From assembly GCA_033442325.1 (NCBI GenBank), contig JAWQFM010000006.1, forward strand, positions 155,198-219,197: a stretch of 64,000 nucleotides of DNA, written 5' to 3'. Positions 46,466 through 64,000 of this stretch are shown in pieces. Position 1 is the stretch's first letter. Every line of letters begins with the position of its first letter. Both the position numbers and the translations under genes were made by a program. The notes below the pieces were generated by a model. It saw only the letters and a list, made by a program, of their open reading frames with translations. It searched no databases and was not told the DNA's origin. The DNA comes from Salpingoeca rosetta. Taxonomy: Eukaryota; Protista; Choanoflagellata.

Positions 46466-50833
<4,368 letters not shown>

Positions 50834-52804: not shown

Positions 52805-55800
52805 ATGATGCGGACCACACAGCAACAGGTGTTCATCACCATCGCTGCGATGATGCTGGCATCAACAGCAGCCCCGACAACCGCAAGTTCACAGCCAGAA
52901 CTGTGCTACCAGGTGGCATGGGGAGTTGGAAGCACGTACCGCAGGCAGGTGATCCGACCCGTGACAGCATTTCCAGCTGAGCATGCCCTGGTGCAAGAAC
53001 AGTATTGTGGCGGCAAGGACGCAGGTACGCGAGCACCTATTGCTGTGCTTGTAACTGTGTGTTGTATGTGTTGTGTGTGAGTGTGTTTGTAGCTTTGTGT
53101 TGCGCGCGTGTGTGTGCGTATGTGTGTGTATGTGTGTTGCAGTGTTGCGGCGCGCTCTCTCTCTCTCTTGCACGCACACTCTCTCGCACACACACACACA
53201 CACTCTCTCTCTCTCTCGCTTTCTGTGCCAACTTTAAGTACTTGTTGCACGTGCAGAAGTGCCTGCTTCCTCACAGCGCTTTCGTTACGATGCGTACACT
53301 TACACAACGCCACAACACATCTTCAGGTGATCCCATCCCTCACGAGGCCCTTTGGAGCAGACGCGGTCGGCACGACCCTAGCCGCTGCCAGCACGTCTCT
53401 GGCGCTGAAGCGTTCTACGTAAGCGGCCCTGCCTCGCTTGAATCTTGCCTGCAGGCAACGACGTGCCAGATGCACACACCACACATTGTCTCGTGCCACA
53501 ACTTTGCCATTGCATGCCCTGGCAGTGCCTTATTCCCTTCAACACCTGTCAAACCCCATCTCACCCTTCATGCGCCACTACTCCCATCCTTGTGGGCCGT
53601 GCATAGGCTTACAACGCCCCTTACGGGTCCTCCAGTAACACTGGGTTCGAGCAAACGGTGAGTCACTCGTCCAAAATACAACGCCATGTCCTGCGCACAT
53701 TGCACTGACTTGTCTCGCACCGCCTCACGTTGCCTGCATACAAACCACTGCCACACAATGCTCTCGTACAGGACACGGACCTTCTCTACTTTGTCGTGGA
53801 CGATGCTGGCGAGGTCTCGTTCGTCGTTGTCCATGACCTGGCCGACGACGGAACAGGCGGCCAAATCAACATCGAGCTCAGCACACCCGGTAAGCAACAC
53901 TGCAGGCACGCCTGATAATTGGCTCTGGCAACTGGGTTCACACGCAAGGACAACAATATGCTTCCTCAACAGCTCAACAACGCGTTTCCCAGTTGCTGCC
54001 ATCACTCAACTATGCTCGCTTCCTGCGTGCGTCTTGTCCTGTGCACAACTATTCGTTTTTTTTTTGTTTCATGTGTTTGTTGCAGATCTCATTGGCGAGG
54101 GTGTCACGCTGAGTGTTCGCGACGATCCCGGCACAACCGCCGACCGCACAACATGCGAGCAGTCCACGGTACGTACACACACACACGTTCACACACGTTC
54201 ACACTCGTACACACGCATACAGAGGCAGCAGGCCTGGCCCATGTTTGATGCCGAAAGTACAACTCAATGTCTGACTCACACCAACACTCGCCTTTGGTCT
54301 TTCAACTCACACCTTGACTACGGTGCATACCTTTTGACAGAGCACGTCCGATTGCTACACTTTCGATGCGTACACCATGACCGGCTATTTCAACCAAATC
54401 TGGGTACGGTGTTGCGGTCCAATGCAATCACACTGCGGCAATGCGTGAGCAAATGATGTGTGACACCGCACATACAGTACGCCGCTGGGTTTTGTTGGTC
54501 AGTGCAACACACCCAAAACACAACACCTCACTGAACGTTGTCTCTTCGCCCGCTTGAAACTGAACAGGCACCATGCTGCACAGACGGCTTTGTCCTGAGC
54601 AAGCTCCCGCTCTTCAACTGGCGGTTCAACTTCAAGTATGACGTCGTTGACCACATCTACAACTTCCGTGTCGGCAACTTCAACCCGGACACGTTTGACA
54701 TGTCCTTCCTGGACTTGGACGCCGCAGAGGTGCTGGCAAACGGCGTGGAGGTCTCCGCCTTCACCTGCAACGACTACTGCAGGGACAAGGTGCTTGATTG
54801 CCCTGCCATGCGCATGGAGGCATGCATGCATGCGTGATTTGTTGTTGTTGTTGTTGTTGTTGTTGTGGTGCGTGTGTGTGGTTTTGGTTGTGTGTCTGCT
54901 TGTGGATGTGTGCGTGTGTGTTTGTGTGTGTATGCTTATGCGTGCGTGCGTGCGTGCGTGTGTGTGTCTGCCTGTTGTCTGCTGCATATGTGTGTATGTG
55001 TTTGCCTAGACTTGTGCACATGTTTCTGCATGGTTCCACGTCCAGGCTTCCACCTGTGTGAGGCCATTGCTCCTTCTTTGCTCACCACACCAACTTGTGT
55101 GCACATGATGTTTTGGTTGCGACATGCACAGTCATGTGGAGAATGCTCCCTCGACCCCCAGTGCGGCTGGTGTGACACCTCCCGCTGCCTCGCCCGCTCA
55201 GAAGAGGTGTGCGCACGGCTTGCATGTTGTTGGATGTGTGTGTGTGNNNNNNNNNNNNNNNNNNNNNNNNNNNNNNNNNNNNNNNNNNNNNNNNNNNNNN
55301 NNNNNNNNNNNNNNNNNNNNNNNNNNNNNNNNNNNNNNNNNNNNNNCACCTCACACACACACACAACACACACACACACACACATCATCGCTCACCACCT
55401 CACGCGCAGGCAACTGGCTGGAGGATACACACACACACACATAACTGCAACACAGCCGACGTGCGCAGGCAACTGGCTGGAGGATGCGTGCTGCCCATCG
55501 TGCGCCGCCCACACAGACTGCCAGGCCTGCCTCAATGCAGACGGGTGCGGCTGGAGCTTCAGCCTCGGCCGCTGCCTCTCCGGCACAACCGACCTCGGCC
55601 TGTGCGAGGCGTCCGAGTTCTACCAAATCCCATCGCCAGGCAACACCATCTGCCGCGTTCTCCCGGGACCCGTCATCTCACCAAACACAACCGCCACCGT
55701 GCCCAGCGCTTACAACAGGTGCGGCACACACACACACACACACGCTAGTTGTGGGCTCGTGTTCACGCACACACAGGCATGCACATTGCGTATGTTTCGT

Positions 55801-58800
55801 TTTGATTCAATGCGCCTTCTCGCTTCCAGTCACACTCACAAACAACACACACCCATACACTCACAAACAACACACACTTGCCCCGTCTCTGCGCACAGCC
55901 CAATCCTGGACTGGTGCAGCGGTAACGGCGACTATGTGTGGGGCGTATCCACAACATGCGACTGCCACGAAGGATGGGCAGGCGATGACTGCAGCATCCA
56001 GGTGAGAATGCCCGTGTTTCCTCTCCTATACGCACGCACAAACACACACAGTCACTTACCACGTGTCTGCTTGTGTGTTCGACTGCAACCACCACCATGC
56101 TCATTTACGCATGTGCTCTCCTGCTGACTTTGTGGCCCATCCCTACACCCCCCACACACCTCACAAACCCACAAACTCACACACTGACAACCTGACATCC
56201 CCCCGTCTTCCTTTCTGTAGTGCCCGCGCGACACAAACGGGCAGGTGTGCGGCGGCCACGGCACATGCGACCAGGGCGGGTTCTGCCTGTGCGAGTGCGG
56301 CTGGGGCGGTCCTGACGGCGACTGCAGCCAGGAGATCCAGTGCGACTGCGAAGTTGTCAACAACGTCAACACGTGCTTCATCAACGAAGAGGACAACTGC
56401 CCCGTGCGCTGCGGCGTTGTGGCCACGGCAACGGACACATGCACGGGTGTGGACGTCGACTTCCACTCCCAGGGCACAGACCGCCGGGTCAACGGCTCCG
56501 AGTGCGTGTGTGCCGAAGGTTGGTGGGGCGAGTCCTGCGACAACGCCTGCCCTGGCATCGACCCTGTCACGGGCGAGGGCGAAGTGTGCGATGGCAACGG
56601 CGTCTGTGACGTCAACACGGGCCAGTGCACGTGCGCCCCTTGCTTTGCGCCAGACAAGTACGGCAACTGCCAGCCCAAGCGCTGCCCAAGCTGCAACGGC
56701 GGTGGCCGCTGCGAGTGCGATGCCGACACGGGCGAGCGCGTGTGCCGGTGCCCCGGCCAGCGCTACGGAACCCTCTGCGAACTCTGCGCCTGCGAGGTAA
56801 TATTATCAAAACACAGTGCAACCCACCTTGCTTCTCTTGCCCTCTCTCCTGTTTGTTGCTGTGTTTGTGTGAGATGCACATCGACGGTGGTTTGTATCGT
56901 GTGGCTCAAAATGCACCTGTACTCACACAACGCGAAACATACACACACGCACAATACTGCAGAACGGCGATTGCAACGCACTGACGGGCCAATGTGACTG
57001 CGATGAAGGCTGGAGTGGCGAGTTGTGCACTTTCCAGTGCTCGCGCGAATCCAAGTGCCACGGCCACGGCACATGCGACCAAGACACAGGTACTGCCAGC
57101 ATCATGCACACACACGCACACAAGCACACTTGCCTTTGGAGTACAGTTGTGTCTGTTGGCGTGTGAGAGGCATGCAGACCTGTTAACCAACACCGCGTCT
57201 GTTGAACCAACCTCACATCTTACCATCGTCTTTGCTTCATTCGGTGTACACAGGAAACTGCGTTTGCGACACGGACTACATTGGCTCGGCGTCGCACCAG
57301 TGCGAGTTCTACTGCCCGGCATCAAAGTGCAACGGGCACGGCTTCTGTGACGGTGACACGGGCGAGTGCGTGTGCCAAAATGGGTACATTGGAGACTCGT
57401 GCCAGGCCGCGTGCGACCTCGACGTGTGCCAGAACGGCGGCACGTGCACGATGGATGAGACAGCGGACCGCGGGTACACATGCGACTGCCCATCGGTAAG
57501 AAAGCACCGGAAGAGCGGGAAGGGAAGAATGCATTGTGCCTTCTGCGTGGAATAAGAGCGAATCAAAGCGTTGTTGTGCTGGTGGCGGGGTTGGCCCGTG
57601 CGACGGCAGCCACGGGGTGTGCAGCAACATGATGCTGACTAACAGTGCTTTCCACAACATTCAATATTTCGCAGGGCTTTACCGGGTACACGTGTGACCG
57701 TGACATCGACGAGTGCCGGAGCAGCGACAGCAACGGGTGCGACGAGGCGCACGGGGTGTGCAGCAACACGGCCGGGTCGTACCAGTGCAGCTGCGAGAGC
57801 GGGTGGCAGCTTGCGTCCAACGGGCGCGACTGCGAGGACGTGAACGAGTGCGCGGATGAGGCGGACAACGAGTGCGACGCGCTTGTTGGCTCGTGCGCGA
57901 ACACGATTGGGTCGTACACGTGCAGCTGCGATGCCGGGTATGAGCTGGGCAGCGACGGGCACACGTGCGAGGACGTGGACGAGTGCGCGAGCGACGAGGA
58001 CAACCTGTGCAACACGGACGTTGGGACGTGCACGAACACGGTTGGGTCGTACGAGTGCGGGTGCGGTGCCGGGTACGAGCTTGGCAGCAACGGGTACAGC
58101 TGCCTGGACGTGAACGAGTGCAGCGCTGCGGAGCTGAACGAGTGCGACGCGAACGCGGTGTGCACCAACACGGCTGGGTCGTACGCTTGCAGCTGCGCGA
58201 GCGGGTACACGGGCGACGGGTTCACGTGCGCTGACCGGGACGAGTGTGCCGGGGACAGCAACCCGTGCGACGAGAACGCGTCGTGCACCAACACGGCGGG
58301 CAGCTTCACGTGCCAGTGCCGGTCTGGCTGGCAGGGCGACGGCGCGACGTGCGCTGACGTTGACGAGTGCACGACGGAGGACGCGTCGCTGGCGCACCAG
58401 TGCGACGCTGCGCACGGGACGTGCGTGAACACCGCTGGGTCGTACGAGTGCACGTGCGAGAGCGGGTTTGAGCTTGCGTCTGACGGGCTGAGCTGCGTGG
58501 ACGTTGACGAGTGCGCTGAGAACGGCGGGGTTGGCCCGTGCGACGGCAGCCACGGGGTGTGCAGCAACACGATTGGCTCTTACGAGTGCGGGTGCGACGC
58601 CGGGTATGCGCTTGGCGCTGACGCGCACGCGTGCGAGGACGTGAACGAGTGCCGGAGCAGCGACAGCAACGGGTGCGACGAGGCGCACGGGGTGTGCAGC
58701 AACACGGCCGGGTCGTACCAGTGCAGCTGCGAGAGCGGGTGGCAGCTTGCGTCCAACGGGCGCGACTGCGAGGACGTGAACGAGTGCGCGGATGAGGCGG

Positions 58801-61212
58801 ACAACGAGTGCGACGCGCTTGTTGGCTCGTGCGCGAACACGATTGGGTCGTACACGTGCAGCTGCGATGCCGGGTATGAGCTGGGCAGCGACGGGCACAC
58901 GTGCGAGGACGTGGACGAGTGCGCGAGCGACGAGGACAACCTGTGCAACACGGACGTTGGGACGTGCACGAACACGGTTGGGTCGTACGAGTGCGGGTGC
59001 GGTGCCGGGTACGAGCTTGGCAGCAACGGGTACAGCTGCCTGGACGTGAACGAGTGCAGCGCTGCGGAGCTGAACGAGTGCGACGCGAACGCGGTGTGCA
59101 CCAACACGGCTGGGTCGTACGCTTGCAGCTGCGCGAGCGGGTACACGGGCGACGGGTTCACGTGCGCTGACCGGGACGAGTGTGCCGGGGACAGCAACCC
59201 GTGCGACGAGAACGCGTCGTGCACCAACACGGCGGGCAGCTTCACGTGCCAGTGCCGGTCTGGCTGGCAGGGCGACGGCGCGACGTGCGCTGACGTTGAC
59301 GAGTGCACGACGGAGGACGCGTCGCTGGCGCACCAGTGCGACGCTGCGCACGGGACGTGCGTGAACACCGCTGGGTCGTACGAGTGCACGTGCGAGAGCG
59401 GGTTTGAGCTTGCGTCTGACGGGCTGAGCTGCATGGACGTTGACGAGTGCGCTGAGAACGGCGGGGTTGGCCCGTGCGACGGCAGCCACGGGGTGTGCAG
59501 CAACACGATTGGCTCTTACGAGTGCGGGTGCGACGCCGGGTATGCGCTTGGCGCTGACGCGCACGCGTGCGAGGACGTGAACGAGTGCCGGAGCAGCGAC
59601 AGCAACGGGTGCGACGAGATTCATGGCTCATGCGTCAACGTTCCAGGCTCGTACGAGTGCGCATGCGAAGCCGGATGGCAGCTGTCTTCTGATTCACGCA
59701 CATGTGAAGATGCTAATGAGTGTGCGGCAAACGGCGGTGTTGGCCCCTGTGACAGCGAGCGTGGCTCGTGCGCGAACACGATTGGGTCGTACACGTGCAG
59801 CTGCGATGCCGGGTATGAGCTGGGCAGCGACGGGCACACGTGCGAGGATGTGAACGAGTGCTTGAGAAACACGCACGAGTGCTCGCACTATTGCAAGAAC
59901 ACGCGTGGGTCGTATGTGTGCACGTGTCCTGACGGCTTTGTGCTGGATGCATCGGGCCACAACTGCTTCTTCTTCTTCTCGACCCCTGTTGGCGAGACTA
60001 CCACGACAACGACCACCACGACCACCTCGACCACGAAACCAGCACAACGCCCACCACCACGACCACGACCAGCACGAACACCAGCGAGCCTGCCACGACC
60101 ACCGCTGGTGCCTCTGACGACGACAACCTTCCAACAAGTGGCGACCTCTCGCTGTTGGCCCGGTGCAGGTGCTGCTGAACGGAAAGCCTGAGCTACGCGA
60201 ANNNNNNNNNNNNNNNNNNNNNNNNNNNNNNNNNNNNNNNNNNNNNNNNNNNNNNNNNNNNNNNNNNNNNNNNNNNNNNNNNNNNNNNNNNNNNNNNNNN
60301 NCTGCACACCTGACGAGAAGCATGTGCAGCTTGCGGAGGATGCGGGCGTGCGGGATGTTGTGATTTCGGCGTTTGCGTCTGTTGCGCAGGTGTCTGAGAT
60401 TGTTCCAGTGCTGTTTATTTCTCCGGCGGAGCAAGCGCTTGTGCTGCAGTATGCGGTTGTTGTGAATGAGGAGGATGTGGCAACTGCTGAGCAGATCGCC
60501 AGCGACGTTGCCGATGAAGTCACCAACATCATGAAGGTGTGTTGTGTTAGACATGCCGTCTTCCTTTCGTGCGGTGCTTCGTGTGTTTGGTCCACTTCTT
60601 GCTCGCATGTCTTTTTTTCCTTGTGTACGTTGCTCACCTTATCACCGCTTTACTTGCTTTACACCTCGCTTTGTTGCAGGGCATCGAGCAACAAGATGCA
60701 GTTCAGTGCCTGTTCTTCGTCGGCATTGATTTCACACGCGAGTCTGACAAGGAAGTTGTTCCCTCAGATACAAACTCATCATCGAACTCCAATGGCATCT
60801 CTATTCCCGTCGCCGCCATAGCTGGTGCGTAAATGCGCATTCGTGTGTCATCACCTGCCTGTGAGTGTTTAGAGAGCTCTGTGCTTTGGATGCTTTCATT
60901 GTGTCTTTGATACTCACATTTGTGCTGGTTGTGAATGCTTTTGAAACAGGCTGTGCTGGCGTGCTGGTCTTGATTGCGCTGATCGTGCTGGCGACGGCGG
61001 TTCGCAAACGCGCTTCTGCCTCTTACGGCTTCGATCTCGGCGCTGGCACGGGCGCAACCGACGATGACTTCAGCAACCCGATGTACTCTGCCAAGGAGCG
61101 CAATGTTGCCTTTGACAATCCCATCTACGATGACGTGGCAGAGAATGACGAGGAGGAGCACGACACTGCGCCAATGGAGAAGCAGGGCAGCTTGGTGTGG
61201 GACTCGTACTGA
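52805..61212 (+). CDS. Type-I membrane receptor: signal peptide, unassigned N-terminal domain, two PSI-like domains, tenascin/teneurin-type EGF repeats, 17 calcium-binding EGF repeats, Thr-rich stalk, SEA-like domain, TM helix, double-NPxY tail
   Basis: Hydrophobic leader [15 protein letters not shown]; PSI-like [14 protein letters not shown] and [14 protein letters not shown]; repeated C.GHG.C EGFs; DVDEC..C.NT.GSY.C.C consensus x17 in exon ~57675-60536; [17 protein letters not shown] followed by RKR; tail [20 protein letters not shown]. Confidence 0.9.
57709..59618 (+). repeat. 936-bp tandem duplication (7 cbEGF modules per unit, two units plus a 38-bp start of a third)
   Basis: 57709-58644 matches 58645-59580. 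Identical shadow ORFs are offset by exactly 936. The only difference I saw is G58497 vs A59433 (Val/Met). Confidence 0.95.
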
Positions 61213-64000
61213 ATGAAGGAAGAACACGACGTAATTGACTGATTGAATGTCTGCATTGTGTCGCACTTGTGCTTCGTACATCGTGAGTGTTTGTGCAATG
61301 AGGGTGTTTGTGTAGGGCGAGCTTGCTGTGTACATGTATGTGTTGTTTGTTTGCTTGTGGCTTTGCTTTGTGAGCAATAGCTTGAAGTGGTCACGAAGTG
61401 ACTTGGTCTCGCAACACGGCGATGTGTTGCAGCGCGAAAACCAAACGCGCGCAACCATCTGCCGAATATGTTCGTTTCATAGCTTGACTTTGTACTGTTT
61501 ACTCATGAGAGCAGAAATAAAACCGTCTGAAGCACCGTTGCATGGGAATCAACGATGTCATGTGACTCGCACAAGACACACACTCATGGGCGTGTCCTGC
61601 ACGCAGGAGAGAATGAGATGCAAATACGAAAAGACACGAGCAGCGAAATTGAACAAAGACATGAACAGCAAAGGACACACAACGAAAGGAGCACGTACGT
61701 AGTTGCATTCAAGCACGACACAGAACAAATCCATAAACAATGCTGAGCATCAAGAAAGATAACTCGAGCAACGACAGAGAACGGGATGGAACAAGGAGAG
61801 GGAAGCCACGGCAACCGGGGTTGTGAGGTCACAAGCTTGTGACTCAAGTCTTCATTCAGTAGCTGTCCCACTCCAGGGACCCGCGACGCTCGTGGTCATG
61901 GTCTGTCTCTTCCCCATCATCCAGGTCATCATAGCTGCAACACAAGAAAGACAGCAGAGCATGGTAAGCTCAGTCCCGTCTTCACTAAGAAACGCGCGCA
62001 CCCAGACACCTACAAACAACCAAGCACACAAGCTTCCAGGGAAGGGGTTCATGCACTCACATTGGGTTATCAAATCCAACGTTGCGACGACGTGTTGAAT
62101 ACATCGGGTTGTCAAAGTCGCCTGTCTCGGCGTCCTTTGCTGCGCCAAGACTGAAACCGTACCCGCCTTGTGCCCGGCGTCGCCGTGTCACTCCAACAGC
62201 GATGACCACCAGCACGAGCAGGACGCACACAGCGGCCACGCCTGAAAAATAAAATAAAAAGCCCAAGGGAAGAAGCAAGGTTAGATAGAATTGGAAGGCA
62301 CATGCGTCAGCATAAGCGAGTGAGGCCACACATGAGGAGGGGGTGAACGAACCGGCAATAACGACAATCGGGATGCCGGCACCCGTCGACTCATTCTCGA
62401 GCTTCGTGTCGTTGGGAATCACTTCTTTGTCAGACTTGCGTGTGAAATCAACACCCACAAAGAAAACACACGAAACCGCATCGTCTTCCTCGATGCCCTA
62501 TCAGAAACGACAAAAGCAGGAAGTGGTGTGACGTGAGTACCAAACGCACAAGACAAGAAATTCCAATCAATGACGGCATCCAAGAAGGAATCAAACACAC
62601 GAAGCACCGCACGAAAGGAAGACGGCATGTCTAACACAACACACCTTCATGATGTTGGTGACTTCATCGGCAACGTCGCTGGCGATCTGCTCAGCAGTTG
62701 CCACATCCTCCTCATTCACAACAACCGCATACTGCAGCACAAGCGCTTGCTCCGCCGGAGAAATAAACAGCACTGGAACAATCTCAGACACCTGCGCAAC
62801 AGACGCAAACGCCGAAATCACAACATCCCGCACGCCCGCATCCTCCGCAAGCTGCACATGCTTCTCGTCAGGTGTGCAGTTCAGGTTCGCGTAGCTCAGG
62901 CTCTCCGTCAGCAGCACCTGCACCGGGCCAACAGCAGACGTCGCCACTTGCTCTGATGTTGTCGTCGTCGAGGCAACAGCCGTCGTCGTTGCAGGCTCGC
63001 TCGTCGTCGTGCTTGTCGTCGTCGTCGTGGTTGGCGTTGTGCTTGTTGTCGTGGTCGAGGTGGTCGTGGTGGTCGTTGTCGTGGTAGTCTCGCCAACAGG
63101 GGTCGAGAAGAAGAAGAAGCAGTTGTGGCCCGATGCATCCAGCACAAAGCCGTCAGGACACGTGCACACATACGACCCACGCGTGTTCTTGCAATAGTGC
63201 GAGCACTCGTGCGTGTTTCTCAAGCACTCGTTCACATCCTCGCACGTGTGCCCGTCGCTGCCCAGCTCATACCCGGCATCGCAGCTGCACGTGTACGACC
63301 CAATCGTGTTCGCGCACGAGCCACGCTCGCTGTCACAGGGGCCAACACCGCCGTTTGCCGCACACTCATTAGCATCTTCACATGTGCGTGAATCAGAAGA
63401 CAGCTGCCATCCGGCTTCGCATGCGCACTCGTACGAGCCTGGAACGTTGACGCATGAGCCATGAATCTCGTCGCACCCGTTGCTGTCGCTGCTCCGGCAC
63501 TCGTTCACGTCCTCGCACGCGTGCGCGTCAGCGCCAAGCGCATACCCGGCGTCGCACCCGCACTCGTAAGAGCCAATCGTGTTGCTGCACACCCCGTGGC
63601 TGCCGTCGCACGGGCCAACCCCGCCGTTCTCAGCGCACTCGTCAACGTCCATGCAGCTCAGCCCGTCAGACGCAAGCTCAAACCCGCTCTCGCACGTGCA
63701 CTCGTACGACCCAGCGGTGTTCACGCACGTCCCGTGCGCAGCGTCGCACTGGTGCGCCAGCGACGCGTCCTCCGTCGTGCACTCGTCAACGTCAGCGCAC
63801 GTCGCGCCGTCGCCCTGCCAGCCAGACCGGCACTGGCACGTGAAGCTGCCCGCCGTGTTGGTGCACGACGCGTTCTCGTCGCACGGGTTGCTGTCCCCGG
63901 CACACTCGTCCCGGTCAGCGCACGTGAACCCGTCGCCCGTGTACCCGCTCGCGCAGCTGCAAGCGTACGACCCAGCCGTGTTGGTGCACACCGCGTTCGC
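59085..64000. repeat. Large inverted repeat: arm 59085-60589 pairs with 62592-64000 and continues beyond the window
   Basis: Reverse-complement identity read by eye and confirmed by mirrored ORFs (59905/63180, 59623/63462). Identity ends 53 nt into an intron. Confidence 0.93.
61856..64000 (-). CDS. Inverted paralog of the EGF-repeat receptor (3' portion; 5' end beyond the window)
   Basis: cbEGF array, Thr stalk and SEA-like exon (62645-64000); GIEEDDAVSCVFFVGVDFTRKSDKEVIP; TM GVAAVCVLLVLVVIAVGV followed by TRRRR; tail [25 protein letters not shown] with stop at 61856. Confidence 0.9.

Follow-up and report, generated by a model that had tools for sequence, protein, structure and literature searches.

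The locus described here raises the question of how two neighbouring genes can be identical in their middle, introns and synonymous sites included, and yet be anciently diverged at both ends. In Salpingoeca rosetta, the window (the whole 64,000-nt stretch of DNA that was analysed) bears a giant gene for a membrane protein with EGF repeats in two copies that converge tail to tail, the right copy running on beyond the window, and the inverted duplication comprises the whole gene: its arms extend on the left from 54615 outwards and on the right to ~240.8 kb of G000:C6, and are much longer than those delimited in an earlier sequence-only reading of this DNA. The stop codons are found at 61210-61212 (+) in the left gene and at 61856-61858 (-) in the right one; recomputed, they are 643 nt apart, the same spacing as in that reading. 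Each gene encodes, in order, a signal peptide, an N-terminal domain, a PSI domain, teneurin-like EGFs, an array of 936-nt (7-cbEGF) units, a Thr-rich stalk, a ferredoxin-like juxtamembrane domain, a TM helix and a tail with two NPxY motifs. The pair represents anciently duplicated convergent genes for type-I membrane proteins. This corrects the public annotation: the 470-aa "gamma-carboxyglutamic acid protein 3 splice variant A" is no complete protein but the C-terminal piece of a much larger one, its cbEGF array being concealed by a 15.5-kb gap.

The outer ends of the two genes are old. In the left gene, the outer zone (52805-54614, +) holds the signal peptide and N-terminal domain, encoded by exons 1-6 (52805-53024, 53327-53418, 53607-53657, 53772-53889, 54086-54168 and 54341-54403) and the first 47 nt of exon 7. 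All boundaries of exons 1-6 are GT/AG, the frame is open and the start codon coincides with the start of the NCBI gene model. The left-gene protein is 1760 aa long. Compared with the right copy, these six exons encode protein that is 78% identical (dS 1.37, dN/dS 0.13), and their introns are unalignable. Pfam searches with N-terminal exons 1 and 7 returned nothing useful, and an Atlas look-up of exon 7 gave scores below the useful range.

The inner ends are old as well. The left tail exons (60680-60824 and 60950-61212, +) were defined by translation and an RNA splice joint, and encode the last juxtamembrane strand, the TM helix and a cytoplasmic tail, in which DFSNPMY and FDNPIY occur and which terminates in WDSY. 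In turn, the right tail exons (62497-62353, 62241-62061 and 61934-61856, -), supported by P0001 (NCBI model), translation and RNA joints, contain one extra intron, which splits FDNP|IY. Over 132 codons the tails share 58% of their amino acids and 60% of their nucleotides, with a saturated dS of ~1.8 and dN/dS of 0.22, and both are open. They have a motif set in common (GF-L-G, a stretch opening with DFx, and the WDSY end), and both keep the same two NPxY motifs, FDNPIY and (F/W)xNPMY; motifs of the NPxY type are conserved across 16 related tails. Within the genome, each tail has the other as its sole close relative. Yet the right tail groups with L032, a contig from another organism (support 97/91, based on short sequences and a single outgroup organism), which shares its extra intron and a YDDLDDG...SLEWD-Y end. 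Because another organism possesses a right-type tail with the same extra intron, the split between the two tail types is ancient and older than the identity of the arms. The sequence-only reading had taken the pair for an old inverted duplication whose TM and tail exons, past a sharp boundary, are diverged though still open, and had asked whether the N-terminal domains differ; the dS values of ~1.4 and ~1.8 and the unalignable introns agree with the former, and the N-terminal ~210 aa of the two copies do differ, by 22%.

Between these ends the picture is entirely different. The outer step is located exactly at 54614/54615, inside exon 7, where differences drop from one per ~3 nt to ~1-5 per 100 nt. 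The intermediate zone that follows (54615-55873, +), comprising the rest of exon 7, the exon encoding the PSI domain and a scaffold gap at 55247-55346, shows ~3-4% substitutions and microsatellite indels relative to the right copy; the substitutions are scattered over 54669-55220 and 55439-55873, some at sites far from contig ends, others adjoining the contig ends at 55247-55346 and possibly errors. The zero-difference zone (55874-60589, +) then spans the teneurin-like EGFs, 17 cbEGFs, the Thr-rich stalk, the first juxtamembrane exon (60303-60536) and the initial 53 nt of the intron behind it. No mismatch to the right copy was found in 55874-57584 and only one (59433) in 57628-59618. Separating the two is a 44-nt intron patch specific to the left copy (57584-57627), which is a fragment identical to cbEGF coding sequence and is replaced in the right copy by unrelated sequence of nearly equal length. 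Further inward, 59085-60041 is the reverse complement of 63044-64000 (957 nt, 100%, the match running off the window end) and 60302-60589 that of 62592-62879 (288 nt, 100%). Altogether, introns and synonymous sites included, there are 0-1 differences over 1711, 1991, 957 and 288 nt, although the perfect identity of the arms is possibly in part a consensus effect. At the inner boundary, 60589/62592, the exon ends at 60536, and the identity is lost abruptly after another 53 nt, within the intron, as the sequence-only reading had it. In the right arm, as far as the window extends (62592-64000, -), the juxtamembrane exon ends at 62645 and is flanked by 53 nt of intron on one side and by the Thr-rich stalk and the last cbEGFs on the other, after which the arm meets the 15.5-kb gap. 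The tandem units have a GC3 of 0.89 and the teneurin-like EGFs one of 0.76; in the innermost arm GC3 is 0.60-0.69, equal to that of the old zones; as it is not raised there, a long history of GC-biased conversion is not visible beside the centre.

The cbEGF array is built of a 936-nt unit encoding 312 aa and 7 cbEGFs, a period that was detected by self-BLAST (the maximum period of TRF being 500). The left gene possesses 2.04 copies (57709-59618, +) that differ at one base (58497/59433). Matches to Pfam PF07645 (EGF_CA) above the gathering score comprise 17 stretches (534 bits) in 57639-60188 and 7 stretches in the right arm. Contigs of the 936-nt unit occur at ~20-23 times the single-copy k-mer depth in two DNA runs, and the right arm is followed by the gap at 64001-79506. 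That this N run might be withheld sequence was rejected, as the NCBI assembly shows the same Ns, and the gap is a real one. This gap probably holds ~16 more identical units of the right gene, so that the genes would carry about 2 (left) and ~20 (right) units, or ~17 and ~140 cbEGFs. The earlier description of homogenised ectodomains therefore stands for the middle ~6 kb, which is identical or nearly so, but not for the N-terminal ~210 aa or for the number of cbEGF units.

Since the reference is a 2010-era Sanger/454 assembly, with the centre on a contig of 3.7 kb that has a gap at either end, we considered whether the assembler put the reads of a single copy into both arms or merged a near-identical repeat into one consensus. 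The gaps at 60202-60301 and 64001-79506 speak for such an artefact, as does the sequence at 60042-60201, which is set apart from the other arm by 17 substitutions, mostly to C, and by 6 frame-breaking indels of one base each. Apart from low-complexity matches, this version has no backing among the contigs of four independent runs. The loose-end contigs at 60053 and 63010 were rejected as support for it, these being Thr-rich low-complexity matches from another locus (C13). The stretch 60042-60201 looks like a low-quality contig end. Opposite the adjoining 100-N gap (60202-60301), the right copy has 6 nt (CCTGAA) and an unbroken frame, and the C14 paralog is likewise continuous at this position; the true size of the gap is probably 6 nt, and the frame of the left gene is broken by the bad contig end alone. 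Against an artefact, both arm/centre junctions are present in independent DNA runs. The X4 unitig (60560-62621) covers the centre and enters each arm by exactly 30 nt (k-1). For the arm contig 62592-63157 the k-mer depth is 187, compared with 110 for the centre (~1.7x, contig depths not being formal copy numbers), without variant bubbles. The X1 contig (60571-63266) shows 0 differences, and no variant letters occur inside the arm; the right arm is likewise covered without variants by both DNA contigs, from an archive (Logan) whose contigs drop rare variants, while RNA contigs extend over 62644-63088. In addition, the assembler did separate the copies, as is evident from marks specific to each: the 44-nt patch, the 3-4% zone and the distinct N-terminal exons. 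The ends of the unitig k-1 nt into each arm, the ~1.7x arm depth and the RNA-confirmed tail introns together establish that the inverted repeat is real, and we regard it as very unlikely that the identity of the arms, or even the second arm itself, is an assembly artefact.

The RNA data also speak for the activity of both genes. The splice joint of the left tail (60823/60949) was found in two RNA runs and those of the right tail (61934/62061 and 62240/62352) in RNA contigs; spliced RNA contigs thus confirm three tail introns and, moreover, show both tails spliced to a shared upstream exon, which again argues against an artefact. A single spliced 1498-nt RNA contig (runs X17 and X19) joins both tails across the spacer between the stops (61213-61855). 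Because RNA contigs span all of its 643 nt, the 3' UTRs of the two convergent transcripts overlap or abut. The two genes are intact as well as expressed, and purifying selection acts on both of their ends.

The juxtamembrane domain had been labelled SEA in the sequence-only reading, a label that is not proven. Pfam SEA (PF01390) gave no match even at E<=10 on P0001:225-470, Pfam returned nothing useful for the split juxtamembrane exon, and a profile of 9 homologues compared with PDB retrieved no SEA chain. The Atlas feature match of this part to a mucin-16-like SEA cluster (0.79) is below the useful range, and the beta2-beta3 turn lacks a GSVVV-like motif (SEA domains being alpha/beta sandwiches beside the membrane, with autoproteolysis at G|SVVV). 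The AF2 model (pLDDT 80, a single-sequence model being too poor at pLDDT 39) has a beta-alpha-beta-beta-alpha-beta order, and its structure matches are generic ferredoxin-like folds (Z<=8.8), with no SEA structure among the matches listed; the predicted fold is ferredoxin-like.

How, then, did the middle become identical? The identical stretch is flanked on both sides by homologous, anciently diverged sequence (outer dS 1.37, inner dS ~1.8), and we consider it highly probable that old inverted paralogs had their middle ~6 kb overwritten by non-allelic (interlocus) gene conversion, the old ends being kept. Arm-to-arm conversion had been proposed from the sequence, and an island of identity between anciently diverged ends, with nested zones, is in keeping with it. 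A break in one copy would have been repaired with the inverted paralog as template, such breaks perhaps starting in the highly repetitive cbEGF array. An older tract would have reached outward to 54615 in exon 7 and since gained 3-4% differences, while a very recent one would correspond to 55874-60589, ending within the intron that follows the first juxtamembrane exon, 53 nt from the start of that intron. The N-terminal and TM/tail exons, outside the tracts, would keep their old divergence under purifying selection; the boundaries may hold because divergence blocks heteroduplex extension, because selection keeps the ends distinct, or both. A recent whole-gene duplication with fast tail divergence was rejected, because synonymous divergence has reached saturation at both ends, the introns defy alignment and there is an orthologue of the right type. 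The succession of a 3-4% zone and a zero-difference zone implies at least two nested conversion events, whose number and order we infer from this layout. A single recent replacement, by one long conversion tract or a partial re-duplication, with the 3-4% zone due to sequencing error or an unrelated older event, seems fairly unlikely: the 4.7-kb zone with zero differences does suggest one very recent event, the innermost arm shows no rise in GC3 and part of the intermediate zone borders a gap, but the scattered substitutions at 54669-55220 and 55439-55873 include sites far from contig ends, and a diverged zone between the sharp step at 54615 and the zero zone is the layout expected of nested tracts of different ages.

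Two other readings concern what the arrangement might do. Homologous recombination between long inverted arms is known to invert the spacer. Here, a 2-kb centre lies between inverted arms that match perfectly over 4.7 kb or more, and a flip would re-pair real differences, given the 22% divergence of the N-terminal domains and the roughly ten-fold difference in array length. Short-read junctions are blind to the orientation of the centre, an inversion within identical arms leaving them unchanged, and the assignment of tails to N-termini depends on assembly mate pairs. Yet the repeats are long homologous arms, with no short specific sites seen, and the same motifs in both tails leave a functional gain in doubt; an inversion system that flips the ~2-kb centre, whether as passive polymorphism or as a diversification switch, is therefore highly improbable as an account of the locus. 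The receptor switching suggested in the sequence-only reading finds no support, because both tails keep the same two NPxY motifs and no signalling difference is visible between them. That the centre inverts at an appreciable rate in cultures, re-pairing N-termini and arrays with tails, and that conversion or inversion of inverted paralogs perhaps reshuffles surface proteins genome-wide, we hold to be quite unlikely; if true, cells would carry either pairing of N-terminal domains and array lengths (~17 vs ~140 cbEGFs) with the two tails. Selection could also maintain paired receptors, the tracts being kept since the two proteins would need a common cbEGF stalk or ligand surface even as their ends diverge. 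This appears unlikely: intact, expressed genes under purifying selection at both ends and a mosaic resembling Siglec-5/14 and Siglec-11/16 (PMC5701461, PMC4042635) are consistent with it, but the tails show no difference in recognisable signalling motifs, introns are included in the converted part, and conversion alone accounts for the identity of synonymous sites.

Interlocus gene conversion thus remains our preferred explanation, and the locus would be a very clean natural case of it, with both tract boundaries resolved to the base, nested tracts of different ages and selected old ends. It affects a gene for a surface receptor in an organism that ranks among the nearest unicellular relatives of animals. 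When the literature was searched for gene conversion in S. rosetta, nothing on this locus emerged. If common in this species, concerted evolution of inverted paralogs would matter for orthology calls and CRISPR targeting.

The LDLR family uses an FxNPxY internalisation signal. FDNPIY in both tails fits FxNPxY and is accompanied by a second motif, (F/W)xNPMY; the S. rosetta proteins lack LDL-A and YWTD modules and have the short motif alone in common with this family. The arrangement of the locus recalls the human and primate Y and X palindromes (PMC8600007, PMC8327919, PMC8981503), whose inverted arms are also ~100% identical, introns and synonymous sites included, around a non-identical centre, with genes inside the arms. 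In contrast to these, the S. rosetta arms are short (~6 kb plus the tandem array), the locus is of autosomal type in a unicellular holozoan and GC bias is not evident beside the centre; moreover, the centre and outer flanks are old diverged homologues, so that the identity forms an island in an older inverted duplication. In turn, the Siglec-11/16, Siglec-5/14 and CEACAM pairs (PMC5701461, PMC4042635, PMC2832619) differ in that the S. rosetta tails share NPxY motifs without an activating/inhibitory contrast, the most N-terminal domain is diverged and outside the tract, and the ectodomains are cbEGF arrays rather than Ig lectins. Yet they offer the same mosaic of neighbouring receptors, with ectodomains near-identical by conversion, distinct TM and cytoplasmic exons, and sharp tract boundaries.

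The sequence-only reading had described two EGF-repeat membrane-protein genes that converge with 643 bp between their stops, and this holds: the left (+) gene ends at 61210-61212 and the right (-) gene at 61856-61858, a spacing of 643 nt. The inverted arms are likewise as reported, with 59085-60041 being 100% complementary to 63044-64000 over 957 nt and 60302-60589 to 62592-62879 over 288 nt. The shared juxtamembrane exon ends at 60536 (left) and 62645 (right), and arm identity extends 53 nt past it into the intron, then collapses. Beyond this sharp boundary lie clearly diverged transmembrane/cytoplasmic exons (tails), two in the left gene (60680-60824 and 60950-61212, + strand) and three in the right (62497-62353, 62241-62061 and 61934-61856, - strand), where an additional intron interrupts FDNP|IY. 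The tails share 58% protein identity across 132 aligned codons, with a pS of 0.68, a saturated dS of about 1.8 and a dN/dS of 0.22.

We found that the arms belong to a much larger structure. Past an N run at 64001-79506, a real assembly gap of 15.5 kb, the minus strand carries a second copy of the whole gene (the window is C6:155198-219197 of the S. rosetta genome, positions beyond 64000 continue it as C6 position minus 155197, and NCBI scaffold GL832956.1 agrees with it at every base and in its gaps). In exact registers, 55874-57584 shows 0 mismatches with the right copy and 57628-59618 a single one, at 59433. The stretch 54615-55873 differs by about 3-4% in scattered substitutions and by indels in microsatellites, and at 54614/54615, within exon 7, differences rise to about one per codon. 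Outward of 54614, six small exons are alignable between the copies, whereas the introns are not. Spliced, these N-terminal exons form open frames in both copies, with differing signal peptides, and from ELCYQ on they show 78% protein identity, a dS of 1.37 and a dN/dS of 0.13; the NCBI 1760-aa model begins at the start codon of the left copy, at 52805. The N-terminal domains, flagged earlier as worth comparing, thus differ by 22% in protein. The domain comprises about 270 aa over seven exons (52805-54834 and C6 ~240820-242825), with no match in Pfam or Atlas.

The identity map, together with the diverged N-terminal exons and introns, shows that the near-identity is a ~6-kb island within a much older inverted gene pair. 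The island is older in its outer part and brand-new in its inner part, a pattern that two or more conversion tracts would leave. With old ends, a near-identical middle and stepwise identity, the earlier proposal of an old inverted duplication homogenised by gene conversion is well supported. Most inter-copy indels are (CA/GT)n and related intron microsatellites at 54860-55060, 55350-55430 and 55725-55873; the scaffold gaps at 55247-55346 and 48012-48111 also sit in microsatellite tracts. One intron that is otherwise the same in both copies differs at 57584-57627 (right copy C6 ~237950-237993): on the left it contains 44 nt that match cbEGF coding sequence exactly (compare 58524 and 59460), on the right an unrelated stretch of nearly equal length. 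A patch templated by the neighbouring repeat could explain this, as could a local error in the assembly.

Could identical arms be an artefact of assembly? The copy-specific marks (N-terminal exons, the intermediate zone at 54615-55873 and the 44-nt intron patch) indicate that the assembler held two copies apart. In the independent DNA run X4, a single unitig (60560-62621) takes in the centre and, on either side, exactly 30 nt of arm; a k=31 graph yields this result when the arms are identical and both junctions are present. Mean k-mer depth is 187 for the arm contig 62592-63157 vs 110 for the centre, a ratio that is only suggestive, these depths not being copy numbers. A contig of DNA run X1 (60571-63266) shows no difference, and no variant letters occur in the inner arm among contigs of the independent DNA runs. 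The contig that carries the centre is 3.7 kb long and bounded by a gap at either end, and since the arms are identical, short reads are blind to the orientation of the centre; the pairing of tails with N-termini is therefore given as in the assembly.

The 100-N gap at 60202-60301 corresponds to 6 nt (CCTGAA) in the right arm, whose frame is open across the matching site (466-aa ORF); the paralog on contig C14 is likewise continuous there. Independent runs provide DNA contigs (62592-63157, 60571-63266) and RNA contigs (62644-63043/63088) that span the right-arm equivalent with no difference. Left of the gap, 60042-60201 departs from the right arm at 17 substituted positions, where the change is mostly to C, and through 6 indels of one base each, which end the long ORF at 60188. 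No contig of the independent runs supports this left version; contigs touching 60053 were ruled out as support, their source being a Thr-rich gene on C13. Our interpretation is that 60042-60201 represents a contig end of poor quality in the Sanger/454 assembly, and that the left gene is then probably in frame.

Two RNA runs yielded a 1498-nt spliced contig leading from the right exon B (the first tail exon) through the right tail, the 643 intergenic nt and the left tail to the left exon B. It stops 19 letters past each exon B, which again corresponds to k-1 of shared sequence. In a second contig the shared exon continues into GCATCGAG, with which both exon Bs begin. The two tails are thus expressed, spliced as modelled and joined to the same upstream exon. 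As spliced RNA contigs from two studies run unbroken over 61213-61855, the 3' ends of the convergent mRNAs overlap or meet, and the two mRNAs could form a natural antisense pair.

The ectodomains contain a tandem array of a 936-nt unit (312 aa, seven cbEGFs), of which the left gene has 2.04 copies (57709-59618, + strand) and the right gene, as far as it is assembled, at least 2.6, all identical. In two DNA runs the unit contigs, one of which forms a loop, reach a k-mer depth 20-23 times that of single-copy sequence; with ~6 units assembled, ~15-17 are missing, which fits the gap length (15.5 kb / 936 = 16.6). The gap (C6:219198-234703) probably holds about 16 further identical units, and the right gene would then probably encode about 140 cbEGFs, although the left gene could account for some of the missing units, as collapsed copies. 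The NCBI model of the right gene (protein P0001, 470 aa) covers only a fragment of it.

Pfam recognises PSI, teneurin-like EGF and EGF_CA domains. The SEA domain proposed for the ectodomain was not recovered: Pfam gave no SEA match, the juxtamembrane domain lacks a GSVVV-type site, and no SEA structure is among the listed matches to its AF2 model, which are generic ferredoxin-like folds. That model, built with a 9-sequence alignment, is a confident (pLDDT 80) beta-alpha-beta-beta-alpha-beta domain, and the inner conversion boundary falls between its helix 2 and last strand.

The left and right tails are each other's only close relatives in the genome, the next matches having 26-34% identity and marginal E-values. 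An exhaustive profile-free search retrieved 23 related tails. The cytoplasmic tail is one of a conserved family marked by GF-L-G, two NPxY ((F/W)x... first), an acidic run and a W-D-x-Y/F end. The module (TM plus cytoplasmic part with two NPxY) occurs on different ectodomains in environmental eukaryote sequences (P0004-P0023; L032, L033), e.g., HYR+EGF in P0004, and appears to be an unnamed tail family. A maximum-likelihood tree pairs the right tail with P0006 (support 97/91) and places the left tail as their sister (91/90). The source of P0006 is a genomic contig of 1 kb that belongs to a different organism (L032, SRR24908157); this contig shares the additional intron of the right tail, at the same codon, and ends in YDDLDDG...SLEWDTY*. 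This grouping and the common intron indicate that the left/right split predates that speciation, as judged from short sequences and a single outgroup organism. A more distant member of the family is a third gene, at C14:430318-433575, in which the Thr-rich stalk and the first juxtamembrane exon are related (DNA identity of 73-84% across ~250 nt) and the tail lacks a close match.

FxNPxY is the LDL-receptor internalisation signal. The FDNPIY of the tails fits it, and by analogy a role in endocytosis or PTB-adaptor binding is likely, equal for both tails. Receptor switching by inversion of the centre, as had been envisaged, finds no footing here, the tails showing no difference in recognisable motifs. 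Yet, a flip would re-pair real differences, as the N-terminal domains (22%) and array lengths (~ten-fold) differ, and a passive inversion polymorphism is possible. As for gene conversion, GC3 is 0.89 in the tandem units and an ordinary 0.60-0.69 in the innermost arm, so long-term GC-biased conversion is not evident beside the centre.

The value of the locus lies in its clear boundaries, hidden giant array and corrected gene models. Contrasting tails are the defining feature of paired receptors, and the S. rosetta pair is without them; still, the locus works in the manner of conversion-homogenised paired receptors (PMC5701461, PMC4042635, PMC2832619) and of sex-chromosome palindromes (PMC8600007, PMC8327919, PMC8981503).
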